64,000 bases of DNA, from contig MCFE01000169.1 of assembly GCA_002104905.1 (NCBI GenBank), positions 62,001 to 126,000 on the forward strand, given 5' to 3'. The notes beneath the pieces were generated by a model. That model saw nothing but the letters and a program-made list of their open reading frames with translations. It was not told where the DNA came from and made no database searches. Position numbers and translations under genes: made by a program. The first letter of the stretch is position 1. Each line of letters opens with the position of its first letter. The DNA is from Basidiobolus meristosporus CBS 931.73 (lineage: Eukaryota > Fungi > Basidiobolomycota). Shown in pieces: positions 13,051 to 62,510 of this stretch.

Positions 13051-14829
13051 CCAGGTGCTGAAGAACAAAAGCCATAATCTGGATCTAGGTGCCAAAGGAT
13101 GTGATTTAGGTCCTGGGTGCAGGTGCTGAAAGATGAAATAGAGGACCTGGGACCAGGTGTTGAAAGATGAGACCTGGAACCTAGGTCCAGCATCTGGGTC
13201 CAGGTGCTGAAATTTGAGTTATAGGACCTGGGTGTAAGTGCTGAAGGACAAGGTCCATGACCTGGATCCAGGTGCTGAAGGATGAGATCTAGGTCCTGGG
13301 CACAGGTGCTGAACAATAAGAATAATGACCTGGGACCAGGTGCTGAAGAATGAGATCCATGACATAGGTCCAGGTGCTGCAGCTTGAGATCTTGGACCTA
13401 GGTCCAGGTGTTGAAGGATAAGGGCAATGACCTGGAACCAGGTGCTAAAGGATAAGACATAGGACCTGGGTCCAGGTGCTGAAAGTGATGATCCATGGCC
13501 TGGTTCCAGGTGCTCAAAGTGGAGATCCATGACCTGGATCCAGGTGCTGAAGGATGAGATCTAGGTCCTGGGCACAGGTGCTGAACAATAAGAATAATGA
13601 CCGGTGACCAAGTGCTGCCGCTTGAGATCTTGGACCTAGGTCCAGGTGTTGAAGGATAAGAGCAATGACCTGGAACAGGTGCTGAAGGATAAGACCTGGG
13701 ACCTGGGTCCAGGTGCTGAAGGTTGAGATCTACAACCTAGGTCCAGGTGCTGAAGGATGAGACCTAGGACCTAGGTCCAGGTGCTGAAGGTTGAGATCTA
13801 CAACCTGGGTCTTGGTAACCAGGACCTTTGTTCAAGTGCTTATATATGAGATCTAGGGCTTGGGTCCAGGTGCTGAAGGATGAGAGCCATGGCTTGGGAC
13901 CAGGTGCTGAAGGATGAGACCTAGGATCTGGGTCCAAGTGCTGAAAGTTGAGATCAAGGACCTAGGTCCAGGTGCTGAAGGATAACAGATTTGACCTGGG
14001 TCCGGGTGCTGAAGGTTGAGATCTACAACCTAGGTCAAGGTGCTGAAAGAAAAGATCCATGATGTTAGCCCAGGTGCTGAAGCTTCAGATCTTAGACCTA
14101 GGTCCAGGTGCTGAAGGATAAGAGCCATGGCTTGGGACCTGGTGCTGAATGATAAGACCTAGCACCTTAGTCCAGGTGCTAAAAGTTGGGATCTAGGTCA
14201 TGGGTCCAGGTGTTGAAGGAAGTGATCTAAGACCTGGGTCAAGGTGCTCAAGGATAAGATCCATGATGTGGGTCCAGGTACTAAAAGCTGAGATATAGGA
14301 CCTGGATTCAGGTGCTGAAGGTTGAAATCTACAACGTGGGTCTTGGTAGCCCAGACCTTTGTCCAAGTACTTAAATACGAGATAGAGGACCTGTGTCCAG
14401 GTGCTGATGATGGATTTTTTGAACATTGCTTAAAAAATCAGGAGTTTCATACACAACCTAGGTGTAGGAGATAAGTGAAGATATTTAGAATCTGGGCACC
14501 AGATGCCAGAGGTTGTCTCCAGATGCCAGAGGTTGTCATGTCACATATTGCTCTACAAAATTAGTTTGTCATTCATGATCAAGATCACGGTGATCAAAGT
14601 TGAGATTCAAGACCTGAGTTCAGGTGCTGTTGCTTAAGATCCAGGATGTGGGTATAGGAGCTGAAGGATGAGATCCAGGTCCTGTGTCCAGGTGCTGAAA
14701 GGTGAGATCTAGGACTTGGGTCCTGGTGTTGAAGGAAGAGATCTAGGACCTGGGTCCTGGTGCTGAAGGATAAGAGCCAATACTTAGGACCTGGGTATAG
14801 GTGCTGAAGACTGAGACTTAGGAACTAGA

Positions 14830-17800: not shown

Positions 17801-18110
17801 CTGAGATCAAGGACCTAGAGCCAGGTGAGGACTTCATGTTGGTTATTACTCTATTAACTCCAGTATGCCATCTAGGACCTTGGTCTAGGTGATAAAGGCT
17901 GAGACTCAGGACCTAGAGCCAGGTGCTGATTGTATGTTTGATATTACTCTGTTGATTCCAGTATTACATCTAGGACCTGGGTCCAGGTTCTGAAGGTTGA
18001 GATTTAGGACCTAGAGACAGGTGCCAATTCCATGTTTGATATCAATCTATTAATTCCATTATTACTTCCAGGACCTGGGTGCAAGTTCTGATGGTTGAGA
18101 TTAGAACCTG
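14830..18110 (+). repeat. 98-bp higher-order repeat (34-bp monomer plus 64-bp long monomer)
   Basis: Period measured at 98 (ATCCAGGACC 15321 vs ATCAAGGACC 15419). The long monomer carries about 30 extra AT-rich bases (..TGATATTACTCTATTAATTCCAGTAT..). Confidence 0.9.
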
Positions 18111-28619: not shown

Positions 28620-31600
28620 GGTCATGATATTCAGCTTTTGTCACCTTAAACCAAGACCCAGATGTTTGCTATTTTAATCTTTACCCAGGTCCTAGATATG
28701 TGCTTTAATAACCTTAACCAAGGTCCTAGTACCACCCATCATTGTCTTGACATAGGTATTGAATCTTGACAATCACTTTACTTTATCCTTTTTTTCAATA
28801 TTCAGTACCTTCAACCAATTTGCTGATCCCAACTTTTATCACATGACCCAGGTCCTAGATCTCAACTTTGAATACCTTAACCTGGTTCTAGATCTTAGCT
28901 TTCATCACCATCTCCCAGGTCCTAGATCTCAGCTTTCATCACCAATACTGAGATTCTAGTTCTTAACTTCCATCACCAATACCCTGGTCCTAGCTCTCAA
29001 CATTGATCACCTTAGCCCAGATCCTAAATGTTAACATTCATCACCTTAGCCCAGGTCCTAGATCTCATTTTCCATCACCTTAGCCCTGGTTCTCAATCTA
29101 AACTTTCATCACCTTAGCCCAGGACCTAAACTTCAACATTCATCACCTTGGCCCAGGTCCTAGATCTCAACATTCATCACCATGACCCAGGTCCTATATA
29201 TCATTTTCCATGACCGTAGCCCATTCATCACCTTAGCCCAGGTCCTCAATCTCAACTTTCATCACCTTGGCCCAGGTCCTAGATCTCAACTTTCATCACC
29301 TTGGCCCAGGTCCTAGATCTCAACATTCATCACCATGACCTGGGTCCTGGATCTCAACTTTGATTACCTTGGCCCAGGTCCTCAATCTCAACTTTCATTA
29401 CCTTAGCCCAGGTCCTAGATCTCAACTTCCATCACCTTGACCCAGGTCCCCAATCTCAACTTTCATCACCTTAGCCCAGGTCCTAGATCTTAACTTTCAT
29501 CACCTTAGTCCAGGTCCTAGATCTCAACTTTCATCACCTTGGCCCAGGACCTAAACTTCAACATTCATCACCATGACCCAGGTTCTAGATCTTAACTTTC
29601 ATCACCTTAGTCCAGGTCCTAGATCTCAACATTCATCACCTTAGCCCAGGTCCTCAATCTCAACTTTCATCACCTTGGCCCAGGTCCTAGATCTCAACAT
29701 TTATCACCATGACCTGGGTCCTAGATCTCAGCTTTGATTACCTTGGCCCAGGTCCTCAATCACAACTTTCACCATGTTAGCCCAGGTGCTAGATCTCAAC
29801 TTTCATCAACTTGGCCTAGGTCCTTAATCTCAACTTTCATCACCTTAGCCCAGGTCCTAGATCTCAACATTCATCACCATGACCCGGGTCCTAGATCTCA
29901 ACTTTCATCACATTGGCCCAGGACCTAAACTTCAACATTCATCACCATGACCCAGGTCCTAGATCTTAACTTTCATCACCTTAGTCCAGGTCCTAGATCT
30001 CAACATTCATCACCTTAGCCCAGGTCCTCAATCTCAACTTTCATCACCTTGGCCCAGGTCCTAGATCTCAACATTCATCACCATGACCCGGGTCCTGGAT
30101 CTCAACTTTGATTACCTTGGCCCAGGTCCTCAATCTCAACTTCCATCACCTTGACCCAGGACCTAAACTTCAACATTCATCACCATGACCCAGGTCCTAG
30201 ATCTTAACTTTCATCACCTTAGTCCAGGTCCTAGATCTCAACATTCATCACCTTAGCCCAGGACCTAGATCTCAACTTTCATCACCTTGGCCCAGGTCCT
30301 AGATCTCAACATTGATCACCATGACCCGGGTCCTAGATCTCAACTTTGATTACCTTGGCCCAGGTCCTCAATCTCAACTTCCATCACCTTGACCCAGGTC
30401 CTCAATCTCAACTTTCATCACCTTAGCCCAGGTCCTAGATCTTAACTTTCATCACCTTAGTCCAGGTCCTAGATCTCAACATTCATCACCTTAGCCCAGG
30501 TCCTCAATCTCAACTTTCATCACATTGGCCCAGGACCTAAGCTTCAACATTCATCACCATGACCCAGGTCCTAGATCTTAACTTTCATCACCTTAGTCCA
30601 GGTCCTAGATCTCAACATTCATCACCTTAGCCCAGGTCCTCAATCTCAACTTTCATCACCTTGGCCCAGGTCCTAGATCTCAACTTTCATCACCTTGGCC
30701 CAGGTCCTAGATCTCAACATTCATCACCATGACCTGGGTCCTGGATCTCAACTTTGATTACCTTGGCCCAGGTCCTCAATCTCAACTTTCATCACCTTAG
30801 CCCAGGTCCTAGATCTTAACTTTCATCACCTTAGTCCAGGTCCTAGATCTCAACATTCATCACCTTAGCCCAGGTCCTCAATCTCAACTTTCATCACCTT
30901 GGCCCAGGACCTAAACTTCAACATTCATCACCATGACCCAGGTCCTAGATCTTAACTTTCATCACCTTAGTCCAGGTCCTAGATCTCCACATTCATCACC
31001 TTAGCCCAGGTCCTCAATCTCAACTTTCATCACCTTGGCCCAGGTCCTAGATCTCAACTTTCATCACCTTGGCCCAGGTCCTAGATCTCAACATTCATCA
31101 CCATGACCCGGGTCCTGGATCTCAACTTTGATTACCTTGGCCCAGGTCCTCAATCTCAACTTCCATCACCTTGACCCAGGTCCTCAATCTCAACTTTCAT
31201 CACCTTAGCCCAGGTCCTAGATCTTAACTTTCATCACCTTAGTCCAGGTCCTATATCTCCACTTTCATCACCTTGGCCCAGGACCTAAACTTCAACATTC
31301 ATCACCATGACCCAGGTCCTAGATCTTAACTTTCATCACCTTAGTCCAGGTCCTAGATCTCAACATTCATCACCTTAGCCCAGGTCCTCAATCTCAACTT
31401 TCATCACATTGGCCCAGGACCTAAACTTCAACATTCATCACCATGACCCAGGTCCTAGATCTTAACTTTCATCACCTTAGTCCAGGTCCTAGATCTCAAC
31501 ATTCATCACCTTAGCCCAGGTCCTCAATCTCAACTTTCATCACCTTAGCCCGGGTTCTAGATCTCAACTTTCATTACTATTACCCAGGTCCTAGATCTCA

Positions 31601-34600
31601 TTTTCCATCACCTTAGCCCAGGTTCTCAATCTAAACTTTCATCACCTTAGCCCAGGACCTGAACTTCAACATTCATCACCTTGGCCCAGGTCCTGGATCT
31701 CAACATTCATCACCATGACCCAGGTCCTAGATCTCATTTTTCATGACCTTAGCCCAGGTCCTGGATCTCAACTTCATTACCTTGGCCCAGGTCCTCAATC
31801 TCAACTTTCATCACCATGACCCAGGTCCTAGATCTCAACTTTCATCAACTTGGCCCGGTCCTGGATCTCATTTTCCATCACCTTAGCCCAGGTCCTAGAT
31901 CTGACCCAGGTCCTAGATCTCATTTTCCATCACCTTAGCCCAGGTTGCAGATCTCAACTTCCATCACCTTGGCCCAGGTCCTCAGTCTCAACTTTCATCA
32001 CCATGACCCGGGTCCTAGATCTCAATTTCCATCACCTTAGCTCAGGTCCTAGATCTCAACTTTCATCACCTTGGCCCAGGTCCTAGATCTCATTTTCCAT
32101 CACCTTAGCCCATGTCCTAGATCTCAACTTTCATCACCTTAGCCCAGGTCCTAGATCTCAACTTCCATCAACTTGGCCAAGGTCCTCATTCTCAACTTTC
32201 ATCACCTTGGCCTAGGTCCTAGATCTCATTTTCCATCACCTTAGCCCAGGTCCTAGATCTCAACATTCATCACCTTAACCCAGGTCCTGGATCTCAACTT
32301 TGATTACCTTGGTCCAGGTCCTCAATCTCAACTTTCCTCACCTTAGCACAGGACCTAAACTTCAACATTCATCACCATGACTCAGGTCCTAGATCTCAAC
32401 TTTGATTACCTTGGCCCAGGTCCTGGATCTCATTTTCCATCACCTTAGCCCAGGTCCTAGATCTGACCCAGGTCCTAGATCTCATTTTCCATCACCTTAG
32501 CCCAGGTTGCAGATCTCAACTTCCATCACCTTGGCCCAGGTCCTCAGTCTCAACTTTCATCACCATGACCCGGGTCCTAGATCTCAATTTCCATCACCTT
32601 AGCTCAGGTCCTAGATCTCAACTTTCATCACCTTGGCCCAGGTCCTAGATCTCATTTTCCATCACCTTAGCCCATGTCCTAGATCTCAACTTTCATCACC
32701 TTAGCCCAGGTCCTAGATCTCAACTTCCATCAACTTGGCCAAGGTCCTCATTCTCAACTTTCATCACCTTGGCCTAGGTCCTAGATCTCATTTTCCATCA
32801 CCTTAGCCCAGGTCCTAGATCTCAACATTCATCACCTTAACCCAGGTCCTGGATCTCAACTTTGATTACCTTGGTCCAGGTCCTCAATCTCAACTTTCCT
32901 CACCTTAGCACAGGACCTAAACTTCAACATTCATCACCATGACTCAGGTCCTAGATCTCAACTTTGATTACCTTGGCCCAGGTCCTGGATCTCATTTTCC
33001 ATCACCTTAGCCCAGGTCCTCAATCTCAACTTTCATCACCTTAGCCCAGGTCCTAGACCTCAACTTTGATCACCTTGGCCCAGGTCCTAGATCTCATTTT
33101 CCATCACGTTAGCCAGGTCCTAGATCTCAATTTTCATCACTCTTACCCAGGTCACAGTTCTCAACCTTCATCACTATTATCCAGGTCCTAGATCTCAATT
33201 TTCAACTTTCAACACCTTGGCCCAGGTCCTGGATCTCATTTTCCATCACCTTAGCCCAGGTCCTCAATCTCAACTTTCATCACCTTAGCCCAGGTCCTAG
33301 ATCTCAACATTCATCACCATGACCCAGGTCCTAGATCTCATATTCCGTGACCTTGGCCCAGGTCCTAGATCTCAATTTCCATCACGTTGACCCAGGTCCT
33401 CAATCTCAACTTTCATCACCTTAGCCTGGGTCCTAGATCTCAACTTTCATCACCTTGGCCCAGGTCCTAGATCTCATTTTCCATCACCTTAGCCCAGGTT
33501 CTCAATCTAAACTTTCATCACCTCAGCCCAGGACCTAAACTTCAACATTCATCACCTTGGCCCAGGTCCTCAATTTCAACATTCATCACCATGACCCAGG
33601 TCCTAGATCTCATTTTCCATGACCTTAGCCCAGGTCCTAGATCTCAACTTCCATTACCTTGCCCCAGGTCCTCAATCTCAACTTTCATCACCATGACCCA
33701 GGTCCTAGATCTCAACTTTCATCACCTTGGCCCAGGTCCTGGATCTCATTTTCCATCACCTTAGCCCAGGTCCTAGATCTGACCCAGGTCCTAGATCTCA
33801 TTTTCCCTCACCTTAGCCCAGGTCGCAGATCTCAACTTCCATCACCTTGGCCAAGGTCCTCAGTCTCAACTTTCATCACTATGACCCGGGTCCTAGATCT
33901 TAACTTTCATCACCTTAGTCCAGGTCCTATATCTCAACTTTCATCACCTTGGCCCAGGACTCAAACTTCAACATTCATCACCATGACCCAGGTCCTAGAT
34001 CTTAACTTTCATCACCTTAGTCCAGGTCCTTGATCTCAACATTCATCACCTTAGCCCAGGACCTAGATCTCAACTTTCATCACCTTGGCCCAGGTCCTAG
34101 ATCTCAACATTCATCACCATGACCCGGGTCCTAGATCTCAACTTTGATTACCTTGGCCCAGGTCCTCAATCTCAACTTTCATCACCTTAGCCCAGGTCCT
34201 GGATCTCAACTTCCATCAACTTGGCCTAGGTCCTCAATCTCAACTTTCATCACCTTAGTCCAGGTCCTAGATCTAAACATTCATCACCTTAGCCCAGGTC
34301 CTCAATCTCAACTTTCATCACCTTAGTCCAGGTCCTAGATCTAAACATTCATCACCTTAGCCCAGGTCCTCAATCTCACCTTTCATCACCTTGGCCCAGG
34401 TCCTAGATCTCAACATTCATCACCATGACCCGGGTCCTAGATCTCAACTTTGATTACCTTGGCCCAGGTCCTCAATCTCAACTTTCATCACCTTAGCCCA
34501 GGTCCTGGATCTCAACTTCCATCAACTTGGCCTAGGTCCTCAATCTCAACTTTCATCACCTTAGTCCAGGTCCTAGATCTAAACATTCATCACCTTAGCC

Positions 34601-37260
34601 CAGGTCCTCAATCTCAACTTTCATCACTTTGGCGCAGGACCTAAACTTTAACATTCATCACCTTGGCCCAGGTCCTAGAACTCAACTTTGATTACCTTGG
34701 TCCAGGTCCTCAATCTCAACTTTCATTACCTTAGCCCAGGACCTAAACTTCAACATTCATCACCATGACCCAGGTCCTAGATCTCAACTTTGATTACCTT
34801 GGTCCAGGCCCTAGATCTCAACTTTCATCACCTTGGGCCAGGTCCTAGATCTCAACTTTCATCACCTTGTTCCAGGTCCTCAATCTCATTTTCCATCACG
34901 TTAGCCAGGTCCTATATCTCAATTTTCATCACTCTTACCCAGGTCATAGATCTCAACCTTCATCACTATTATCCAGGTCCTAGACCTCAATTTTCAACTT
35001 TCAACTCCTTGGCCCAGGTTCTAGATCTCAACTTTCATCACCTTGGCCCAGGTCCCAGATCTCATTTTCCATCACCTTAGCCAGGTCCTGGATCTCAATT
35101 TTCATCACTCTTACCCAGGTTATAGATCTCAACCTTCATCACTATTATTCAGGTCCTAGATCTCAATTTTCATCACTCTTACCCAGGTCCTAGATCTCAA
35201 CTTCCACAACCATTACCCATGTCCTAAATCTCTACTTTCATCACCTTAGCCCAGATCCTAGATCTCAACTATGATCTCTATTACCCAGGTCCTAGATCTC
35301 AACTTTCTTCACCATTACCTAGGTCATAGATCCCAACTTTCATCACCTTAGGCCAGGTCCTAGATCTCAACTATCATTGCTATTACCCATGTCCTAGATA
35401 TCAGCTTTTATCACCTAGGCTCAGGTCCTAGATCTCAACTTTCATCACTATTACCCAGGTCCTAGATCTCAACTTTCATTATTATTACCCAGGTCCTATA
35501 TCTCAACTTTCATCACTCTAACCCAGGTAATAGATCTCAACTTTCATCACAATCACCTAGGTCCTAGATCCCAATTTTCTTCATTCTTACCCAGGTCTTA
35601 GATTTCAACTTTCATAACCATTACCCAGGTCATAGATCTCAGCTTTCATCACTATTACCCTGTTCCAAGATCTCAACTTTCATCACCATTGTGCAGGTCA
35701 AAGATCTCAACTTTTATCTCCTTAGCCCAGGTCTTAGATCTTAATTTTTATCACCTTAATCCAGGTCCAAGATCTCAACTTTCATCACCTTAGCCCATGA
35801 TCTAGATCTCAACTATCATCACTATTACCCAGTTCCAAGATCTCAACTTTCATCACCATTGCCCAGGTCAAAGATCTCAACTTTCATCACCTTAGTCCAG
35901 GACTTAGATCTTTATTTTTATCACCTTAAGCCAGGTCCAAGATCTCAACATTCATCACCTTAGCCCAGGTCCTGGATCTCAATGTTCTTCTCCTTTGTCC
36001 AGGTTCTAGATCTCAACTTTCATCACCATTACCTGGGTCCTAGATCTCAACTTTCATCACCCTTACCCATCTCCTAAATCCCAACTTTAGCAACTATTAT
36101 CCAGGTCTTAGATCTCAAATATCATCACCATTATCTAGGTCCTAGATCTCAACTTCCTTCACCATTACCCAGGTCCTAGATCTCAACTCTCATTACTATT
36201 ACCCAGGTCCTAGATCCCAACTTTAATACTCATGTGCCAGGCCTTAGATCTCAACTAGCATCACAATAACCCAAGACCTAGATCTGTACCACCATGACCC
36301 AGGTCCTAGATCTCATCTTTCATCACTATTATCCAGGTCCTAGATCTCAACTTTCATCACCTTAACCTGGTCCTTGATATCAACCATCATCACCATATAT
36401 GCAAGCCCTCGGCATTGACTTTCATCACCATAACTTAGGTCATAGATTTCAGCATTAATCACCATAATCCAGGTCCTATATCTCAGCTTTCATAACCTTA
36501 ACCTGATCCTAGATCTCCACTGTCATTACTGTATACAAAAGCCCTAGGCATCAACTCTCATCACCATAACTTAGGTCATAGATCTCAACATTAATCACCA
36601 TAATCCAGGTCCTAGATCTCAACATTCATAGCCTTGATTCAGGCCCTAGAACTCAACTTTCATCACCCTTATGCAGGCCCCACATCTCTACTTACTTCAC
36701 CTTAACAACATCCTAGATCTAATTTGCTTCATCTTGACTGCAGTCCTAGATCTCTACTTTCTTCACCTTGACTTCAGTCCTAGATCTCTACTTTCTTCAC
36801 CTTGACCACCATCCTGGATCTCAGATCTTATCACCTTGATCCAGGTCCTAGACTTTGACTATCATCACCATCCCCTTAGCCCAAGTCCTAGATCTCAGCT
36901 TACATCACAATTCCCCAGGTCCTAATTCTCTACTTTCTTCACCTTTACCCACATCCTGGTTCTCAACTCCCATCACCATGATCCAGGTTCTATATCTCAG
37001 CTTTCATCATCATTGCCCAGGTCCTAGATCTCTGCTTTCTTCACATTGGCCCACATCCTGGATCTTATCTCTCAACACCTTGACCCAGGTCCTAGATCTC
37101 AACTTTCACTGCCATTACCCAGATGCTAGATCTCTGTTTTGCACCTTGACCCACATCCTGGATCTCAACCTTCATCACCTTGACCCTGGATCTATATCTT
37201 AACAATCAACACCTTGACTCAAATCTTAGATGTCAGCTTTGTGATCCTGACCTAGGCTCT
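28620..37260 (-). repeat. 34-bp satellite array, reverse orientation; plus-strand consensus CCCAGGTCCTAGATCTCAACTTTCATCACCTTGG
   Basis: Reverse complement GGACCTGGGCCAAGGTGATGAAAGTTGAGATCTA matches the forward monomer at about 30 of 34 positions. Homogeneous from about 29030 to 35100. Confidence 0.95.
31845..33020. repeat. Near-perfect 562-bp tandem duplication within the reverse array (16 monomers plus one 18-bp truncated monomer)
   Basis: Diagnostic ATCTGACCCAGG at 31899 and 32461 (offset 562), with rare variants (CAGGTTGCAG, CTCAGTCTC) repeated at the same offset. Partial third copy near 33730-33900. A 306-bp (9x34) duplication also occurs at 34144/34450. Confidence 0.85.
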
Positions 37261-48274: not shown

Positions 48275-48711
48275 ATGTACAACCATTTTACCGCAGCTTG
48301 TGCTCTATTGATGGTCGTCAGTGCCTTTGGAAGTCCCGTAGATGTGTCAAGCACAAATGTAGCGAGCGCATCCATCTCCGATAGGAACAAGTGGTGAAGA
48401 GGTTCTCGTCCAACAAGGAAGAGGAGGCGCAGAATATTCGGCACTATATTGATGGCATTCTCGGCCAGATGTCAAGGAATATTTTCGACCAGACTCTCTC
48501 GGATAAGCAAGACGCCGACCAAGATGTCGAGGAAGAGGAGGGCAATCCAGAAGAGGCCCAGCTATGGGGGAGATACGGTGGATACGGGCGGCGGAGGGGC
48601 AGATACTGGGGACGAGGACGCTACGGTCGCTACGGTGGTTATGGAGGTCGATGGGGATATGGACGCTACGGGGGATATGGAGGGTATGGTGGATGCGACT
48701 GGGGTTGCTGA
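48275..48711 (+). pseudogene. Family A copy 1: frameshifted by a 13-nt deletion near 48388; downstream pro-region and mature peptide frame intact
   Basis: ATG 48275 gives MYNHFTAACALLMVVSAFGSPVDVSSTNVASASISDRNKW* (stop 48395-48397). Second frame 48391-48711 is intact. TATATAAA at 48228-48235. Confidence 0.8.
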
Positions 48712-49116: not shown

Positions 49117-49630
49117 TGTGTGTTTTTCTGTGTGTATGTCTGATGAAGAAGGTGAGCATTGCAAGCGATTTTATAGGAAATTATCCCGGCTTGTAAGGAG
49201 AGACAGGCTGAGCTACCATGATGAAGCAGAATATTCTATACTATTTGCCAAATTCGCTTTGCGCTAAGCACTTTATTTTTAAGGAGAAACTAGTGAACTC
49301 AAGTGATGATCCTTGTATTGTTCGATTGCACCAGGATGACTAGTGTTGGCCTGCATATGTGGCACGGATGATATGTGGCACGGATGCGTTGCCTCCTCAC
49401 TTCCATTAGTATCGTAACGCCAAATATGGTGAGTGCAATTTAGGCTTAAATAAAGTGATGTGGTTTCTGCTACACTTCAGCATGCTTAGTATTGCCCATT
49501 TGTAGCTCACTCATTCATCTCCTGATGAAGGAAGACAGATAGTGGTGGTCAAAGAAAAAGAGGACCAGTATGGGATTGATAACGTAAAAGACACACAAGA
49601 GGAGGCTCCATCTATCCTTTGGTATTCACC

Positions 49631-49768
49631 ATGCGCAAGCACTTTTCCATCGTCCTTATGCTTTTAAATTCCGGTTCAGTCAATGTGGTAAGTGTGTTCA
49701 TCTCTTCTCCAAAGCCGGGAAATGGTGTGTGGGTTCCAGCCAACCAGAGAAGATGCTCTCTTGTTTGA
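49631..49768 (+). pseudogene. Truncated MRKHFSIVL-type paralog (45-aa ORF) related to family A
   Basis: MRKHFSIVLMLLNSGSVNVVSVFISSPKPGNGVWVPANQRRCSLV*. Paralogous to 52422-52604 but lacks the Gly-rich tail. Confidence 0.55.
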
Positions 49769-50161
49769 GCTGCTAATCCATTACATCATGCTGTTAAGCT
49801 TACTATTAATACTGTCATCAAACACAACTCTAAATCATGCAAAATAAAGGCCGATTTTTGCGGCACTCTTTGGAGGCTCTCGCTACTTTTCTACCCATTT
49901 CCGGTTATGAGAGAAGTACCTACCACTTTCATGAAACACAGTATAGGCATCTTTATACCATGACTAGCATTGTTTATTGCGGTAGAAGGCAAACAGAAAT
50001 CGAGTATTTATACTTCAGCTGCGGTGGTTGCCTCCGAAATATACTACATCATTTGACTGAAGCTTCCTAGATGCGATATCTATAAGCCTCCGTCTTGTCC
50101 AAATGCTGTATCTGTATATAAAGGCTGGTGCTGAGCTTTATTAGAGTATTCGACTTTCACA

Positions 50162-50598
50162 ATGTACAAACAACTTACCGCAGCTTGTGCTCTATTAACG
50201 GTCGTCAGTGCCTTTGGAAGTCCCGTGGATGTGTCCAGCACAAATGTAGCGAGCGCATCCATCTCCGGTAGGAACAAGTGGTGAAGAAGTTCTCGTCTAA
50301 CAAGGAGGAGGATGCGCAAAATATTCGGCACTACATCGATGGCATTCTTGGCCAGATGTCAAGAAATGCGTTCGATTGGACCCTCTCGGATAAGCAAGAA
50401 GCCGACCAAGGAGTCGAGGAAGAGGAGGGTAATCCTGAAGAGGCCCAGCTATGGGGGAGATACGGCGGATATGGGCGGCGGAGGGGCAGATACTGGGGAC
50501 GAGGACGCTACGGTCGCTACGGTGGTTATGGAGGTCGGTGGGGATATGGACGCTACGGGGGATATGGAGGGTACGGTGGATGCGACTGGGGTTGCTGA
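50162..50598 (+). pseudogene. Family A copy 2: same 13-nt deletion and frameshift as copy 1; mature peptide frame intact
   Basis: ATG 50162, stop 50282-50284 (40 aa). Frame 50278-50598 is intact. TATATAAA at 50115-50122. Confidence 0.8.
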
Positions 50599-50722
50599 AT
50601 AACAAGGATCAAGGCTTTCATTCACTCCAACAACACAGCTTGTCTGTGTGCTTGAATAAAGTACCGTTGCATTTTATCTATCGTAGTGAATGGCCATGTG
50701 ATTATGACTCTTATTGAGAGTG

Positions 50723-51003
50723 CTAGCTGGCAGAGGCCCTCACTGCTCCAAAGGTCACTTCTTTTCCGTTCTTCGCGATGTGTATCTCGAGTTGTTTGGA
50801 GGTAATCGTAGCAATCCTGCTCCTTTTCCTGTTGCAATCTTGCAGAGAAGGGTACAGGATCGCATTGGCGAAGGTGCTGGGCGGTCCGAAAGTGATGCTT
50901 GCGGTATCTACCAGTTCGCAGATCACGTGTTGGCATGAGCCGAGGTTGATATGTGGGTTAGCAGTACCACGGTTAAGGAGCAGAGAACGGATTTGAATTG
51001 CAT
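50723..51003 (-). pseudogene. Family B deletion copy
   Basis: MQFKSVLCSLTVVLLTHISTSAHANT* then out-of-frame exon-2 remnant. Same deletion junction as the 48837 copy. Confidence 0.75.
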
Positions 51004-51398
51004 TGTGTGTGTTTCACCGCTGAATTGAATATTGAAGAGGATTGTATAAAGCTATAAGGAGATAAGCACGGTTGGCAAGGAGAGACAGGCAGAGTTACCA
51101 TGACAATGAAGGGGAATATTTGATTATTGGAAGAACGAATATGATGCCAATTCATCACGCTTACTTCAGTTTCTAGCCAAGAGAGCCCGTGCCTTGCTAT
51201 TAGTATCACAAAGACGTTGCGGTTGCTACGGAGGATACACTCCATTCACCTTTTGCTGGATAATCATAATGATATGTAGGCATATTCTAGGCTTTCGTTC
51301 ACTAGTCTGTTACAGTTGCTCTTTCATTCTGGCTGTGTATATCTAATGGGATGCATTCTTTGTAACTCCTGACTGAACAATGCGGTTTATTGAGGATG

Positions 51399-51825
51399 CT
51401 AGCTGACAGATACTCTTACTGCTCCAACAGTCACTTCTTTTCCGTTCTTCGCGATATGTACCTCGAGTTGTTTGGATGTTATAGCAGCAATCCTGTTCCT
51501 GCGATTGTTACAATCTTGCAGAGAAGGATACAAGATGGCTTGGGCAGAGGTACTGGGTGATTCAGGGGTGATGCTGGCAGTATCCACCGGTCCAAAGGTC
51601 ACGCGTTGGCATGAGCCAGCTGAGAATGGTAGTTGTTGTGCAGTATCTTCAGGAGTATTCACCAATTCTACATTGTAAGTATTTGGTTAGTAAGGCTCAC
51701 TGGTTGCGGCTAGTTGAGTTATATACTGATTACATACTTAGTAACGCACTAGAGGATTGTGCTGAAGTTGTTGTGCAGGCTAGTAGTGCCATGGTCAAGG
51801 AGCAGAAAACGGTACTGAATCGCAT
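51399..51825 (-). CDS. Family B intact gene: 118-aa small secreted protein, two exons (51825-51738, 51667-51399), two Cys in the mature part, unknown function
   Basis: Spliced product MRFSTVFCSLTMALLACTTTSAQSSSALLKLVNTPEDTAQQLPFSAGSCQRVTFGPVDTASITPESPSTSAQAILYPSLQDCNNRRNRIAAITSKQLEVHIAKNGKEVTVGAVRVSVS*. Exons of 88 + 269 nt give 119 codons. N-terminus is signal-peptide-like; TATA lies upstream; intron position is conserved in the 62529-62943 paralog. Confidence 0.8.
51668..51737 (-). other. 70-nt spliceosomal intron
   Basis: Donor GTATGT (51737-51732), branch point TACTAAC (51692-51686), acceptor TAG (51670-51668). Splicing restores one open frame. Confidence 0.85.
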
Positions 51826-51891
51826 TGTGTGTGCCTCGGTGTGTGTGCTTCTGTGTGTACGTCTGATGAACAAGGTGAGCATTGTAAGCGA

Positions 51892-51914
51892 TTTTATAGG
51901 AAATTAGCCCGGCT
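51892..51914 (-). promoter_or_regulatory. Family B TATA box (TATAAAA, 51898-51892) with adjacent palindrome AGCCCGGCT (51906-51914)
   Basis: About 70 nt upstream of the ATG. The block recurs at 47641-47662, 49170-49191 and 62992-63013. Confidence 0.6.
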
Positions 51915-52421
51915 TGTAAGGAGAGACAGGCTGAGCTACCATGATGAAGCGGAACATCCTGTACTATTGTATTCACTCCGAAATTTCCGAATTCGCTTTG
52001 GGCTAAGCATTTTTTTTAAAAGGAGAAACTATCGAACTCAAGCGAAGCTCCTTGTATTGTTCGATTACACTGGGATGACTAGTGTTGGCTTGCATATGTG
52101 GCACGGATGCGTTGCCTGCTCACTTCCATTAGTATCGTAACGCCGATTATGGTGAGTGCGATCTAGGCGTAAATAAAGCGTTGTAGTTTCTGTTACACTT
52201 CAGCTTTAAATTTTGAGTACATGCTTAGTATTGAGTGTTACACATAGGTATTACCCATTTGTAGCCCACTCATTCATCTCCTAGTGAAGGAATCAGATGG
52301 TGGTGATGACTTCTGGTGAAGAACGGCAAATGGTGGTGGTCGAACAAAAAGATGACCAGTGTGGGATTGATAACGTAAAAGATACACAAGAGTAGGCTCC
52401 GTTTATCCTTTGGTGCTCACC

Positions 52422-52604
52422 ATGCGCAAGTACTTTTCCATCGTTCTAATACTTTTTAATGTGACAAGTGTATCCATCTCTTCTCCAAAGCCAGGAAACG
52501 GTGTGTAGGAAGAAGGTGCTCGCACCAGAGAGGGCAGGTGACGAGGTCGTTATGGTCACTTCGGGGACTATGATGGTCGCTGGGAACTTGGAGGGTTTGC
52601 TTGA
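52422..52604 (+). pseudogene. MRKYFSIVL-type paralog of family A with two in-frame stops
   Basis: MRKYFSIVLILFNVTSVSISSPKPGNGV*EEGARTREGR*RGRYGHFGDYDGRWELGGFA* (61 codons). The tail resembles RGRYGRYGGYGGRW. Confidence 0.65.
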
Positions 52605-52922
52605 GCTGCTAATTTAATACATCATGCTGTTAAGCTTACTACCAATATTGCGATCATCCACAACTCTAAATCATGCAAAATAAATGACAATTTTTGAGGC
52701 TCTCTTTTGAGGCTCTCGCTGTTTATCTACCCATTTCCGTTTACGAGATAAATACTTGCCACTTTCATATAACATAGTATAGAAATCTCTATACCACGAC
52801 TAGTGTTGTTAACAGAAATCGAGTGTTCGTACTTTGGCTGCGGTGGTTGCCTCCGAAATATACTACATCATTTGACTGAAGCTTCTTAGATGCGATATCA
52901 ATCAACCTCCATCTTGTATGTG

Positions 52923-52930
52923 TATATAAA
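52923..52930 (+). promoter_or_regulatory. TATA box of the intact family A gene
   Basis: TATATAAA ends 40 nt before the ATG, with the same spacing at 48228, 50115 and 56425. Confidence 0.7.
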
Positions 52931-52969
52931 GACTGGTGCTGAGCTTTATTTGAGTATTCAACATTCACA

Positions 52970-53419
52970 ATGTACAAACAACTTACCGCAGCTTGTGCTC
53001 TACTAATGGTCGTCAGTGCCTTTGGAAGTCCCGTAGATGTGTCAAGCACAAATGTAGCGAGCGCATCCATCTCCGATAGGGATCCACAAAGTGGCCAAGT
53101 GGTGAAGAGGTTCTCGTCCAACAAGGAAGAGGATGCGCAGAATATTCGACACTACATCGACGGCATTCTCGGCCAGATGTCAAGAAATACGTTCGATCAG
53201 ACCCTCTCGGATAAGCAAGACGCCGACCAAGATGTCGAGGAAGAGGAGGGCAATCCAGAAGAGGCCCAGCTATGGGGGAGATACGGTGGATATGGGCGGC
53301 GGAGGGGCAGATACTGGGGACGAGGTCGCTACGGTCGCTACGGTGGTTATGGAGGTCGATGGGGATATGGACGCTACGGGGGATATGGAGGGTATGGTGG
53401 ATGCGACTGGGGTTGCTGA
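52970..53419 (+). CDS. Family A intact gene: 149-aa intronless secreted prepropeptide (signal about 1-19, acidic pro-region about 20-99, Gly/Arg/Tyr/Trp-rich cationic C-terminal peptide about 100-149 ending CDWGC)
   Basis: Full ORF with hydrophobic N-terminus ending AFG-SP, a KR site in the pro-region, an upstream TATA and a downstream AATAAA. Paralogs conserve the peptide. Confidence 0.9.
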   Translation: MYKQLTAACALLMVVSAFGSPVDVSSTNVASASISDRDPQSGQVVKRFSSNKEEDAQNIRHYIDGILGQMSRNTFDQTLSDKQDADQDVEEEEGNPEEAQLWGRYGGYGRRRGRYWGRGRYGRYGGYGGRWGYGRYGGYGGYGGCDWGC

Positions 53420-53475
53420 ATAATAAGAATCAAGGCTTTCATTCACTCCAACAATACAACTTGCCTATTTGCTTG

Positions 53476-53481
53476 AATAAA
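53476..53481 (+). terminator. Polyadenylation signal AATAAA
   Basis: About 57 nt after the stop. AATAAAGTA is conserved after the copies at 48.7, 50.6, 55.2 and 56.9 kb. Confidence 0.55.
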
Positions 53482-53544
53482 GTACCGTTGCATTTTATCT
53501 ATTGATAGTGAATGGCCATGTGATTATGACTCTTATTGAGAATG

Positions 53545-53807
53545 CTAGTTGGCAGAGACTCTCACTGCTCCAACGGTCACTTCTTTTCCGTACTTCGCGA
53601 TGTATATCTCGAGTTGTTTAGAGGTAATCGTAGCAGTCGTGTTCCTTTTACGGTTGCAATCTTGCAGGGAAGGGTACAGGATTACTTTGGCGGAGGTGCC
53701 GGGTGGACCGGAAGTGATGCTTGTGATATCTACCGGTTCGCAGGTCACGTGTTGACATGAGCTGATGTTGACACGGTTAAGGAGCAGAGAAGGGTATTGA
53801 ATCGCAT
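53545..53807 (-). pseudogene. Family B deletion copy
   Basis: ATG at 53807, the shared TCAGC/TCATG junction, and exon-2 remnant TCEPVDITSITSGPPG..GAVRVSAN*. Confidence 0.75.
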
Positions 53808-54974
53808 TTTGTGTGTTTCACCACTGAATTGGATACTGAAGAGGACTGTATAGAGCTTTAAGGGGATAGGGACGGTAGGCAAGGAGAGATAGGCAGGGTT
53901 ACCATGGCAATGAAGGGGAATATTTGATCACTCCTGGGTGTATTACCCTTACTTCAGTTTCTAGCCAAGCGAGCCCATTCCTTGCTACTAGTAACATAAT
54001 AAAGCTTAAGTCAAGTGAAGTACGGGCGCTACAATTTTATAGTATGAGTAGCTTGTTTTAGTGTGTGTGACTTGAATTTCTATTCGCTGTAAGTGTAAAA
54101 CCGGATTGAATGCATGTATATATATTCGTAGAGTGAAATAACTCACTGGCTCGTGGTAAAATTTATTCAAAACACAAATCTTTATAGCCTTTCCATGACT
54201 GATAGTGGTGGTGAAAGACACGCCCGGTTGGTACGTAGATTAGGTGAAAGGCTTTACCAGCTTAGGTATTTATCCCAAGTGACATGTAGGTATTACTGCT
54301 TAGTGAAAGGTTGCACGAGGTCGGGCTAGAGACGTGGGGACGAAACTGGAGAGATACGCGATAAGAGACGGGGATTAAGCCCTATTGAACCTCCATCTCT
54401 CTCTACAACGGCTTCCATACAAGGATTCTGATTCAACCTCTCGTCTGCCCTACAACACGGATAAGATCTTGTGACCCTCTGATCTTTGTGGAGAATATCT
54501 TTTGAGCGTTTGCTTAATAACCATGATGGATATGGTAGATAAATACACTCATGTTGGAGTATCTATCACGTGAAGCTGGCAGCATTCTACTTGTCAAGTT
54601 ATTACTGACTGATACTTATAAGGTTCATTGCAGTCACACTCAAAAATTATTATCAGCACCTACAATGAAGTTACTTGCAAGCAAGCTATATGCACTGTTA
54701 GATAAGTACAGAAGTATACTAATTTCTATATTATAGCATCCTAACTTTAAGCTTATTTATTCCTCGTTCAGCTGACCTATACTTGAGGATGTATTGCGGC
54801 AGGTTGACTGTATGCGTAACTGACTAGGAATAAACACTGGAGTTGGATGTAGCTAGATAGGTTCAAGAGATGTGATAAATGTTTCGATCAACCATGCCAC
54901 CCTTTAATGAATATGATTAGTGGTAGCAACGGAAGGGGATACGGTGATAGGATACATTGGTACATGGAGATGGC

Positions 54975-55158
54975 GAATGCTGACCAAGGAGTTGAGGAAG
55001 AGGAAGGCAATCCCGAAGAGGCCGAGCTATGGGGGAGATACGGCGGGTATGGGCGGTGGAGGGGCAAATACTGGGGACGAGGACGTTACTGTCGCTGCGG
55101 TGGTTATGGAGGTTGGTAGGAATATGGAGGGTATGGTGAATGCAACTGGGGTTGCTGA
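54975..55158 (+). pseudogene. 5'-truncated family A copy with premature stop
   Basis: NADQGVEEEEGNPEEAELWGRYGGYGRWRGKYWGRGRYCRCGGYGGW*EYGGYGECNWGC*. No signal peptide or TATA. Confidence 0.8.
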
Positions 55159-55262
55159 ATAATAAGAGTCAAGGCTTTCATTCACTCCAGCAACGAATAA
55201 AGTAATGTCGCATTTTATCTATCGATAGTGAATGGTCATATGTATAACTCTGATTGTGAATG

Positions 55263-55497
55263 CTACTTGGCAGAGACTCCTACTTCTTTTCCGTTATTTG
55301 GAAGCAGTCGCAACAATCCTGTTCCTTTTCCTGTTGCAATCTTACAGAGAAGGGTACATGATTGCTTTGGCGGAGGTGCTGGATAGTCCAAAAGTGATGC
55401 TTGCGGTATCTACCGGACACGTGTTAGCATGAGCCGATGTTGATACGCGGGTTAGCAATGCCACGGTTAAGGAGCAGAGAACGGCATTGAATCGCAC
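55263..55497 (-). pseudogene. Family B deletion copy with further deletions; ATG mutated to GTG
   Basis: Aligns by eye with 50723-51003. Confidence 0.7.
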
Positions 55498-56054
55498 TGT
55501 GTGTGTTTTACCGTCAAATCGAATATTAAAGAAGATTGTATAGAGCTATAAGGGGATAAGCACGGTGGGCAAGGAGAGACGGGCAGTGAAGGGGAATATT
55601 CTATTAGAGTACTTTTTTCAGTCTTGGGAGTACGCATATGATTACTTCAGTTTCTAGCCAAGAGAGCCCGTTCCTTGCTACTAAAATCACAAAAAGACTT
55701 GAATCACTACAATTTTATCGTGTATGCCTTGTTATAGTGTGTGTGGCTTGGGTTCATATATGTAAACAACTGCAATAGTGGCTATAAGTGCAAAACCTGA
55801 TTAAATGCATGCATATATTTGTAGAGTGAAATAACTCATTGAAATCTCTATAGTCTTACCGTTAGGCATATGACTGATAGTAGTGGTGAAAGATGATGCC
55901 CCGTTGATGCCCCGTTGATGCGTAGATAAGCCTTTCATACGAGGATTCTGTTTCAATATTGTCTGCCTCAAAACACGGATTTTTAAGATTTTTTACCCTC
56001 TGAGCTTTGTGGAGTGTATCATTTGAGCGTTTGTTTAATAACAAAGACACTGAC

Positions 56055-56471: not shown

Positions 56472-56864
56472 ATGTACAAACAACTTACCGCAGCTTGTGC
56501 TCTACTAATGGTCGTCAGTGCCTTTGGAAGTCCCGTGGATGTGTCAAGCACAAATCTCCGATAGAAACCCACAAAGCGGCCTAGTGGTGAAGAAGTTCTT
56601 GTCCAACAGGGAGGAGGATGCGCAGAATTTTCGACACTACATCGATGGTATTCTCAGCCAGATGTCAAGGAATACGTTCGATCAAGCAAGCAAGGCGCCG
56701 ATCAAGGAGTTGAGGAAGAGGAGGGCAATCCAGAAGAGGCCGAGCTATGGGGCAGATACTGGGGACGAGGACGTTACGGTTGCTACAGTGGTTATGGAGG
56801 TCGATGGAGATATGGACGCTACGGGGGATATGGAGGGTATGGTGGATGCGACTGGGGTTGCTGA
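56472..56864 (+). pseudogene. Family A copy with several deletions
   Basis: ATG 56472 gives MYKQLTAACALLMVVSAFGSPVDVSSTNLR* (17-nt deletion at AT microhomology). Further deletions follow FDQ and fall in the start of the mature peptide. Ends ..GGCDWGC*. Confidence 0.85.
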
Positions 56865-57484: not shown

Positions 57485-58510
57485 CTATCTATTCCAGAAG
57501 CAGCTAGCCCATGGATCAAATATTTCATCAATAGTGAATATTTCAAATTCATCTGTTTCAAACTCTTTGCAAAATGAGTTTGGCATATTAGGGTTTTGTG
57601 CAAAATATCTGTAAAGATATTGCAAATTCTCAGATTTCATCTCAGCTAATCGGTTAGCTGAAAATATTGTAGGGTAGGACAAAATACCAGTGCCTAAGAA
57701 GTTTGTGATCATATATACTGGCCCAGCACGGTCCAGAGTGTGCTTAAAACAGTTATAGTTAAAATGAGGATATTGCTGACGTATTGTAAACCATAATGCG
57801 CGTAGAATGATCTTGCTGGCCCCAAGAGCAGTTCAAATTGTGGATGGTTGGTGGTTTGTCAGTGTCATTCTTGCAAAGGTACTATAGCAGCTGTAAAGGT
57901 TATAGTAAAATGCATTGGATGCTCCGGTGGCTGCTTCTTCCATAATTCTGCACTGATGTACATCCTTTGATAACATGCGCAAGAATCCTAATATTGATAT
58001 TGGCATTTGTTGACTACCGTAGCCATACGCACCAGATTCTTGTGTTTCTGAAGGTGAGCAGCCAGCATCCTTTGCTAGCTGCTTGACCAATCTGAACTTT
58101 GTTGTGTATTGCTGAATGTTGCAAATGAATTGGGATACCTTTGGATTCTGAATATTGCTAATATTTCCAGTGTTAAGCTCTGTTGCAGTGGAAAAGGGCG
58201 TAATGTTGTAGCTATTTGCTGCTTGAATAGAATTCAGCAGTAAATGGCTAGTTGCATGCTCAAGAAACCTCAAATCATCCTCCATTGAAGTTCCATCGCA
58301 ATAAACAGTGGTAAATATGCCACCTGATGAAGTTGATGTAATTTTGAAGCGATGAAGAATTGCCTTGACAGTTGATATTATTCTGTGGGCCTCTTGCCAG
58401 CTTCTGACCTCCAAGCAGAGCTTTACAGCACTAGCAACTGTAGGGTGCTCATTGGTCCATTCAAGGAGGGTTTGCATATTCCCATAATAGCTTTGTTTTC
58501 AGGTGGGGTT
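57485..58510 (-). mobile_element. Possible hAT-like transposase 3' remnant
   Basis: ORFs 57833-58477 and 57485-57712 are in one frame separated by a single TGA (40 open codons between). PT*KQSYYGNMQTLLEW, WQEAHRIISTVKAILHRFKITS and LWFTIRQQYPHF..ANRL loosely resemble the TRWNS, W..L..F...T and dimerisation motifs. Family call is weak. Confidence 0.4.
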
Positions 58511-61566: not shown

Positions 61567-61988
61567 ATGAGCAAGTACCTCTTGATCATCTGCACACTCT
61601 CAATGACTTCATATGTAGTTGCAATTCCTGTAGAGCAAACCAACACCAATGTAGCAAGCGCCACCATCTCTGTTCAAGATCCTCAAAGCAAAGAGATGAT
61701 AACAAAGCTCCAGTCTACTGAGACAAAGATGCTTGTGCCACTCTTGATGACATATTCAGCCAAATGTCAGGCAATGAGCTTGCGAATAAACAAGCAGCCT
61801 CCACTAATGAAGATGTCAACTTGGAAGAAGCCAAGCTATGGGGAAGATATGGCGGGAGATATGGTAGCTACATGAGCAGAAGGGGCAGGTACTGGGGACA
61901 AGGACACTATGGTTGCTATGGTGGTTATTGGGGACGTTAGGGATACAGTTGCTACGGTGGGTATGGCAGGTGCAACTGGGGTTGCTAA
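61567..61988 (+). pseudogene. Diverged full-length family A copy with a frameshift, a stop and CpG decay
   Basis: MSKYLLIICTLSMTSYVVAIPVEQTNTNVASATISVQDPQS.., frameshift near 61720, then DKDACATLDDIFSQMS..EEAKLWGRYGGRYGSYMSRRGRYWGQGHYGCYGGYWGR*GYSCYGGYGRCNWGC*. Confidence 0.8.
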
Positions 61989-62344
61989 ACACTTGAAATC
62001 AGTCACATAGTACAGGGTAATTCAAATTTGTTGGTTCCAAGTAACCAAGAATGTCAGCATGCAAATACTTGGATGTATATGTTTTCCATACTTGTACTTG
62101 GTTGTATGAGGCTAAGCTACCAGTAGCACTGCACATATTCACTTGAACAGCTTAGTGACAGTGGAAGGCAGACAAGCAACTAGTGTTTGAATTTGGTGAG
62201 TTATGGTTGTTACGGAGTGAGTTGTGGTATCTTTGCCGCAGTAAGTATAGAAGACACTGGGTTGCTTATTTACCATGCCAAGCCTTACAACTACATTAGA
62301 CAACCACATAGCTGCCATAGCTCTTGATTGATGAAATCATGCAA

Positions 62345-62510
62345 CTATATTGTGTGCTCTACTTGAGGCTGCCAGTGCCTTTGGAAACCCTTTGCAGGTA
62401 ACAAGCACAAATCTTGCAGGTTCATCCATCTCTGGTAGGGACCCACAAAGTGGATAAGTGGTAAAGAAGTTCTTATCCAGCATGGAAGAAAAGGTTCAAA
62501 ATATTCACTA
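62345..62510 (+). pseudogene. Family A N-terminal half relic fused to the family B 3' flank
   Basis: GTGCCTTTGGAAACCC..AGCACAAAT..TCCATCTCTGGTAGGGACCCACAAAGTGG..AAGAAGTTC matches the copy-3 N-terminal half; the tail is deleted. Confidence 0.7.

Follow-up and report, generated by a model that had tools for sequence, protein, structure and literature searches.

A family of secreted-type precursors with an acidic pro-region, a conserved junction and a cationic glycine-rich tail in Basidiobolus meristosporus: proposed masked peptides with a possible antimicrobial role

Introduction

Known fungal antimicrobial peptides are built on cysteine-stabilized folds (defensin-like, AFP/PAF), are non-ribosomal peptaibols or are Kex2-cut toxins such as candidalysin, and we know of no fungal family of linear, charge-masked peptides rich in glycine, arginine and aromatic residues, i.e. 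of the animal or plant type. The closest described systems belong to other organisms. NLP-29/31 and the caenacins of C. elegans are Gly/Tyr(/Arg/Trp)-rich peptides that carry Gln or Glu at the N-terminus, ahead of an aromatic residue and a Gly. The mussel adhesive Mfp-3, with about 45–50 residues, is a secreted, disordered and cationic protein rich in Gly, Arg, Tyr and Trp, which relies on the conversion of Tyr to DOPA. Plant glycine-rich proteins (GRPs), shepherins and Pg-AMP1 possess both a signal peptide and a Gly-rich stretch of low complexity, and several act as antimicrobials, while in indolicidin, tritrpticin and synthetic (RW)n peptides it is the content of Arg and aromatic residues that drives binding to the membrane interface.

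Here we analyse a stretch of 64,000 nucleotides (in the following ‘the window’, whose positions are used throughout) from B. meristosporus CBS 931.73, a frog-gut fungus. It contains a gene for a 149-amino acid precursor in which an acidic pro-region is followed by a strongly cationic tail, as well as several decayed copies of this gene. The best explanation, to which we assign a probability of roughly 0.45, is a secreted disordered prepropeptide, whose acidic pro-region masks the cationic tail until the latter is released, probably as an antimicrobial peptide. Judged from its sequences, the family seems to represent a cationic, glycine-rich secreted-precursor design with an unusual non-basic junction in a fungal lineage without described cases; full-text literature searches on Basidiobolus yielded nothing on a glycine-rich secreted or antimicrobial-peptide family of this type.

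Results

An intact gene in a gene-poor and satellite-rich region

The gene and its signals are the following.

52970..53419, + strand: intact intronless gene, ATG to TGA, 149 codons plus stop, encoding 149 amino acids
52923..52931, + strand: TATA box TATATAAAG, 39–47 bp 5' of the ATG, read from the sequence
53476..53481, + strand: AATAAA polyadenylation-type signal, 57 bp 3' of the stop

The annotation of B. meristosporus CBS 931.73 includes exactly this product (P0030), and an identical 149-residue protein is encoded on MCFE01000394.1 and MCFE01000829.1 of assembly GCA_002104905.1, with the segment on MCFE01000829.1 being 98.8% identical to positions 49470–54145. The window thus represents a further paralogous or allelic segment of this genome. 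It is extremely gene-poor, with a single open reading frame (ORF) of more than 150 amino acids in 64 kb, and the 149-amino acid ORF ranks second in length. The block that includes the TATA box, TGTATATAAAG, is unchanged across four aligned paralogous copies, and over the 3' 100 bp the identity to A1 and A2 (listed below) amounts to 92%. Taken together, its rank in length, the invariant TATA box, the AATAAA signal and the purifying selection among intact paralogues (see below) show that this ORF is not due to chance. Rfam and tRNA scans of the 64-kb window gave no hits.

Two other genes or ORFs in the vicinity deserve mention.

51399..51825, − strand: family-B gene for a small secreted-type protein, two exons with one GT..AG intron, head-to-head with the intact gene (A3)
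57833–58477, − strand: longest ORF of the window, 214 amino acids, no Pfam family

The family-B protein has two Cys and no Pfam domain, and AlphaFold gave no confident model for it (pLDDT 37.1). Genes of our family, here termed A, alternate with family-B genes, with decayed B copies located behind the remaining A genes. Gene B has an orthologue of 76% identity in B. ranarum (P0056, locus L009). The five neighbouring ORFs that were scanned against Pfam produced no significant match (best E 0.15). Segment 57017–59073, which includes the longest ORF, is 97% identical to L002 5775–7831, where a 239-amino acid gene is annotated.

The array of A and B genes is embedded in satellite DNA, with large arrays of a 34-bp unit located at 7624–14342, 15240–18109 and, in opposite orientation, at 28825–37186. 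These also show higher-order units of 98 and 102 bp, with about 160–245 copies and a match of 74–78%, and they account for GC skews of +0.3 and −0.47 as well as for spurious ORFs rich in Pro, Gly and Ser. The same satellite also lies beside another family copy at L003 1–1649.

The protein might also be read as a signalling peptide or host-directed effector, for instance pheromone-like or directed at the animal gut: it is a small, secreted and processed-type precursor in a repeat-rich and gene-poor region, a setting typical of effector compartments, it is restricted to one lineage, and its gene is paired with another one for a small secreted protein. A low-complexity sequence with a charge of +9 and dozens of near-identical copies would, however, be unusual for a specific ligand, and there was no sign of a receptor or a mating locus nearby; we consider this reading improbable.

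Architecture of the precursor

The protein is organized in the following parts.

52970..53026, + strand: predicted signal peptide, residues 1–19, with Lys3, a hydrophobic core and A-F-G before the predicted cut
53027..53266, + strand: pro-region, residues 20–99, net charge −11, with the conserved motif NVASASIS
53105..53110, + strand: Lys46-Arg47, the sole dibasic (Kex2-type) site of the pro-region
53219..53266, + strand: acidic 16-mer DADQDVEEEEGNPEEA, residues 84–99, 9 of 16 residues acidic (6 E and 3 D by script count)
53267..53416, + strand: cationic Gly/Arg/Tyr/Trp tail, residues 100–149, with degenerate 9- and 18-bp repeats
53402..53416, + strand: C-terminal C-D-W-G-C (C-x3-C), a candidate small disulfide loop

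In the N-terminus, the highest 12-residue Kyte–Doolittle mean is 2.47, and an AxG/AxA sequence occupies one common alignment column in the 149-residue, 139-residue and WGR subfamilies (for these, see below), from which we infer a signal peptide of about 19 residues. The prepropeptide layout that the original prediction had proposed, i.e. a hydrophobic N-terminus followed by an acidic pro-piece and a cationic tail, thus appears to be conserved in three subfamilies. Its numbers were also reproduced: counting the 50 C-terminal residues by script yields G21 R10 Y10 W4 C2 Q1 L1 D1 with a net charge of +9, exactly as claimed for Gly, Arg, Tyr, Trp and Cys, and the 16 residues that precede the tail do contain nine acidic ones. 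Of six family representatives, five have a corresponding 16-mer charged −7 to −9, while that of P0005 is at −4.

That the precursor is charge-balanced, as also proposed, stands as an approximation within the Gly/Arg/Tyr (GRY) family. Here, pro-regions of −7 to −11 and tails of +6 to +9 roughly cancel in four members, and the charge of the whole chain is between −3 and +2 (−2 for the present protein minus its 19-residue signal segment), but the balance fails in some precursors of a sister family, where whole-chain charges are +2 to +11. The KR at residues 46–47 is KR or KK in the 149-residue subtype and KR in the WGR_HK lineage, but TR or TQ at the equivalent position of the 139-residue subtype, and hence is not conserved. 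The tail itself consists of Gly to 42% and, apart from a single Leu, is devoid of aliphatic hydrophobic residues and is not classically amphipathic; it includes an RRR that is missing from the 139-residue subtype. The terminal C-D-W-G-C is unchanged in all intact members and reads C-N-W-G-C in two decayed copies, and its two cysteines may form a disulfide, possibly closing a small loop. A GPI or wall-anchor signal at the C-terminus was not found.

Structure prediction with AlphaFold2 on the family alignment returned no confident fold (mean pLDDT 44.7, pTM 0.18). The model shows only a weak hairpin and, in the pro-region, a weakly predicted helix (residues 53–84), and the tail had a pLDDT of about 40. 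This low-confidence model is consistent with a disordered peptide.

The main rival of an antimicrobial role is an adhesive or wall-matrix role, i.e. a structural, adhesive or coacervating extracellular protein, in which either the tail alone or the entire chain as a diblock polyampholyte becomes part of a cross-linked matrix. Cross-links could be of the cation–π or dityrosine/DOPA type, and candidate sites are the adhesive of the capilliconidial beak or a wall layer of conidia or zygospores. Composition and size resemble Mfp-3 and Gly/Tyr-rich matrix proteins, a total charge near zero (−3 to +2) favours self-coacervation, and the disordered model suits a matrix protein as well; moreover, capilliconidia of Basidiobolaceae carry adhesive material on their apical beak (PMC13370150). 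On the other hand, the C-terminus lacks an anchor signal, the Pfam GRP family is not matched (see below), and no tyrosinase, laccase or peroxidase gene was seen among the window ORFs of at least 100 amino acids, five of which were scanned against Pfam and gave no match.

Amplification and decay of gene copies

Besides the intact gene A3 (52970–53419), the window contains six broken family copies, i.e. about seven in total.

48275..48711, + strand: paralogue A1, with a 13-bp deletion after the signal peptide that leads to a frameshift and stop; tail intact
50162..50598, + strand: paralogue A2, with a 13-bp deletion identical to that of A1; tail intact
54979..55586, + strand: partial decayed copy, acidic stretch and tail with internal stop, ending in C-N-W-G-C
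56472..56864, + strand: paralogue A5, frame lost past the signal peptide by indels, 26 bp missing at the start of the tail
61567..61989, + strand: diverged third-type copy with frameshift and internal stop, tail starting with K-LWGR and ending in C-N-W-G-C
62353..62506, + strand: N-terminal fragment of a further copy, with in-frame stop

An intron that would rescue the 13-bp deletion in A1 and A2 can be rejected, as plausible splice sites are absent. DNA identity of A3 to A1 and A2 rises from 69–88% in the flanks to 92–95% in the pro-region and 97–99% in the tail, and the tails of A1 and A2 still encode the tail peptide of A3 with zero amino acid changes. This gradient suggests gene conversion among copies alongside selection, or very recent inactivation.

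Genome-wide, there are at least 24 distinct intact paralogues (counted as full-length sequences, from a signal-like start to the C-D-W-G-C end, among the family proteins retrieved), which have only nine tail variants. The distinct annotated sequences fall into two 90%-identity clusters of 28 and 11, and two subtypes can be discerned, one with 149 residues and a tail starting with Q or E, the other with 139 residues and a tail starting with E. With a total of roughly 40–60 copies and frequent decay, the family is a clear case of birth-and-death evolution in a satellite-rich genome compartment. Several annotated ‘hypothetical proteins’ (P0002 and P0006–P0013) derive from pseudogene copies with a frameshift; when the Gly-rich tail is read in its +1 frame, the result is an Asp/Thr/Gly/Val-rich artefact that ends in ..DATGVAE.

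Selection on the tail

Between the 149- and 139-residue subtypes, the tail differs by 16–18 synonymous changes on about 36 synonymous sites and by only 4–6 non-synonymous changes on about 114 sites, which corresponds to a dS of 0.66–0.82, a dN of 0.036–0.055 and an omega of 0.05–0.07 (Fisher p = 1e-8 for purifying selection). In the pro-region, the same comparison gives a dN of 0.40 with dS being saturated. The tail is thus the most constrained part of the protein-coding gene, and a constrained tail next to a diverged pro-region is the pattern expected of a precursor whose active product is the tail, with an accessory role for the pro-region.

These data also bear on whether the ORF has a function at all. 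With six of seven window copies broken, a setting rich in satellites and repeats, and frameshifted A1 and A2 tails that are 97–99% identical to that of A3 and point to gene conversion, A3 could be a non-functional passenger of segmental or repeat amplification that stayed intact by chance or by conversion. Conversion alone, however, cannot produce a tail omega of 0.05–0.07 with about 17 synonymous changes, and many copies are intact and have conserved TATA and poly(A) signals, such that we consider a passenger ORF highly improbable. As to the matrix reading, near-invariance of the tail and high copy number would suit a bulk material.

A conserved junction shared with a (WGRGR)n sister family

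The transition from pro-region to tail is marked by a distinct motif.

53258..53287, + strand: junction motif EEAQLWGRYG, residues 97–106, a candidate processing signal at the acidic-to-basic switch

In an alignment of four subfamilies, EEA-[QE]-LWGR-[YWF]-G is the best-conserved window of 10 residues (8 of 10 identical), with E97, E98, L101, G103 and R104 being invariant, whereas apart from the junction cross-family pairs are only 37–41% identical or less. This alignment includes precursors from the same genome (P0017, P0018 and P0058) that have (WGRGR)n tails with neither Tyr nor Cys. Both families have in common a signal peptide with AxG/AxA in the same column, closely followed by A-x-A-S-[IV]-S, as well as a strongly acidic segment and the junction [ND]-P-E-E-A-[QE]-L-W-G-R-[YWF]-G. 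Sister-family genes also occur in tandem arrays, with five copies at L004 4.9–10.2 kb (4924–10246) and others on L010 (43–3666); some copies are frameshifted in the tail. In the WGR_HK lineage of this family, a second PEEAQL is found upstream, again where acidic sequence gives way to basic, and it precedes a long (HHKK)n block rich in Lys and His. The comparison thus yields a junction motif that links two families and is duplicated in one lineage.

A motif that is kept amid change and recurs where the charge flips looks as expected for a processing signal and supports the idea, put forward in the original prediction, of cleavage at EEA/Q. This support is comparative, from the conservation of the junction and the duplicated PEEAQL, and as the conserved block spans both sides of the junction, a cut may lie at this point or next to it. 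The alternation of Q and E at the first position of the tail is compatible with a pyroglutamate. A canonical dibasic site is absent from the junction, and Kex2 cutting at KR46–47 was rejected as a general mechanism, as this site is missing in the 139-residue subtype. Stepwise trimming by dipeptidyl-peptidases, the precursor route of melittin and alpha-factor, was rejected too, as it would require an alternating pattern of Ala or Pro, which the pro-region lacks.

Chemically, the Arg/Trp repeats of the sister tails are typical of membrane-active peptides and therefore strengthen the antimicrobial reading. They also weaken the matrix alternative, because here both the junction and the positive charge are retained without Tyr or Cys, and Tyr cross-linking thus is not a conserved feature. 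On balance, we regard an adhesive or matrix protein as rather unlikely, even though it is the foremost competitor.

Search for relatives and for modified or repeat-type precursors

A word-based protein search produced 13 matches, all from B. meristosporus CBS 931.73. A HMMER profile of eight intact members, run against 1.84 billion representatives with a cut-off of E ≤ 1e-3, also gave 13 matches, 11 of which are from B. meristosporus and none of which is a named relative from outside this species. The other two are metagenome proteins of similar layout (P0019 and P0020, E 2e-4 to 3e-4), which we treat as compositional look-alikes. The family therefore seems to be so far undescribed and, within these searches, seen only in B. 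meristosporus. In the annotated proteome of B. ranarum no match was found, which is weak evidence of absence given its fragmented assembly; this proteome is covered by the database, since gene B retrieves its orthologue there, and on the 3.4-kb B. ranarum contig with the gene-B orthologue an A-type gene is absent.

As a separate observation, P0020/P0022 is an unrelated-looking 136-residue protein, encoded at 6001–6411 of L005, L006 and L007 (metagenome and Logan contigs), that has the layout of our family, in which a signal-like N-terminus and a long spacer are combined with a basic tail rich in Gly, Trp and Arg. It lies about 1.3 kb from a gene for 876–983 amino acids with a faint tyrosinase match.

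The original prediction was to be given up in case of a clear match to a known structural cell-wall family of glycine-rich proteins that stays unprocessed, and such a match did not emerge. Pfam holds no fitting family, NCBIfam has no match for the window protein, and membership in Pfam GRP (PF07172) was rejected with 12.9 bits (E = 0.18, residues 82–144 only) against a gathering cut-off of 30. Likewise, an oomycete ‘glycine-rich protein’ cluster of the ESM Atlas was discarded, as its score of 0.83 is within the chance range.

Two family proteins, P0037 (ORX77630.1) and P0041 (ORX77023.1), have the UniRef name ‘RSAM-associated Gly-rich repeat protein’. This name would fit the precursor of a ribosomally synthesized and enzymatically modified peptide (RiPP), and a related possibility is a Kex2-processed repeat protein (KEP), a class in which B. 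meristosporus tops 1461 surveyed fungi (PMC7329392). NCBIfam, however, gives no match for either protein at E ≤ 1, such that the UniRef name looks like a compositional false positive. Furthermore, a radical-SAM or DUF3328 gene was not seen in the window, whose ORFs do not exceed 214 amino acids and where five neighbours are Pfam-blank; repeated cores separated by dibasic sites, as in a KEP, are absent, and six family accessions are not found in the part of the supplementary text of PMC7329392 that was available. Modified or repeat-type precursors are the least probable of all readings considered, and together with the plant-type GRP and the junk ORF they are disfavoured after testing.

Discussion

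A charge-masked peptide and its possible release

In our preferred reading, i.e. a masked cationic peptide, the precursor would be exported by means of its signal peptide of about 19 residues, with the acidic pro-region, whose charge peaks in its last 16 residues, neutralizing the +9 tail throughout synthesis and transport. An endoprotease of non-dibasic specificity would then cut at or beside EEA-[QE]-LWGR and thereby free the tail, which may in addition acquire an N-terminal pyroglutamate and the C-x3-C disulfide. The free peptide, being cationic and rich in aromatic residues, would most likely act on microbial envelopes and could serve competition in gut, dung and soil, with the many near-identical gene copies potentially providing dosage.

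Several findings speak against this reading. Since the junction has no dibasic site and KR46–47 is not conserved, no known fungal convertase fits. The tail, with its near lack of aliphatic hydrophobic residues, is not amphipathic in the usual way. It is near-invariant within the family, in contrast to the fast diversification of many antimicrobial peptide genes, and a make-up of Gly, Tyr, Arg and Trp would suit an adhesive or matrix protein just as well. Finally, six of the seven window copies are broken.

A wider version of the masked-peptide reading, which is tentative and in our view somewhat doubtful, takes both families as a modular system of linear cationic peptides. PEEA-[QE]-L would then be a non-dibasic signal at each acidic-to-basic switch that frees chemically different peptides, i.e. 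the Gly/Arg/Tyr tail with its C-x3-C loop, the (WGRGR)n repeats and the Lys/His-rich block. If true, this would be the first animal-type arsenal of gene-encoded linear cationic antimicrobials described in a fungus and would imply a new specificity of a pro-peptide convertase.

The conserved junction would hint at a processing protease not described so far. If active, the family would offer new peptide antimicrobials and shed light on the competition between bacteria and an early-diverging fungus that lives in the gut; alternatively, the family could represent a new natural underwater-glue sequence.

Comparison with known systems

The original prediction had presented the likeness to NLP/caenacin peptides and to Mfp-3 as compositional and not as homology, and this is in accordance with our profile search, where such relatives did not appear. 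Genes for Gly/Tyr-rich peptides of the nlp and cnc type in C. elegans are clustered and diversifying (PMC2453101). The Basidiobolus family is NLP/CNC-like in kind only, that is by small Gly/Tyr-rich secreted-type precursors and by tandem clusters that expand and decay; homology to the C. elegans precursors is not indicated, as no named nematode protein was matched among the 1.84 billion representatives. Apart from animal standing against fungus, only Basidiobolus has the long acidic pro-piece and the EEA-[QE]-LWGR junction, and the nematode precursors are without the terminal C-x3-C.

In predicted disorder as well as in size, composition and cationic charge, the tail seems similar to Mfp-3, but there is no homology, Mfp-3 has no acidic pro-region, and the Basidiobolus sister family has no Tyr. 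Plant GRPs, shepherins and Pg-AMP1 differ in pro-region, junction and C-terminal motif. The (WGRGR)n sister tails and, in part, the GRY tail with its 4 Trp and 10 Arg resemble indolicidin and tritrpticin; this likeness is one of composition only, and the GRY tail, in which Tyr dominates and Gly makes up 42%, has a far greater length.

With respect to the order of its parts, the precursor corresponds to those of frog dermaseptin-type peptides and alpha-defensins, where a signal peptide is also followed by an acidic spacer and then a cationic peptide. There is no homology to these precursors, whose processing occurs at Lys-Arg or at other defined sites, whereas no basic residue marks the Basidiobolus junction, and the Basidiobolus tail is near-invariant within a subfamily instead of hypervariable. 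In both cases, however, peptide and pro-piece come close to balancing each other in charge, and as in those animal precursors, a conserved pre- and pro-part with its junction precedes cationic tails that are very different from each other, i.e. GRY-CDWGC in one Basidiobolus family and WGRGR repeats in the other.
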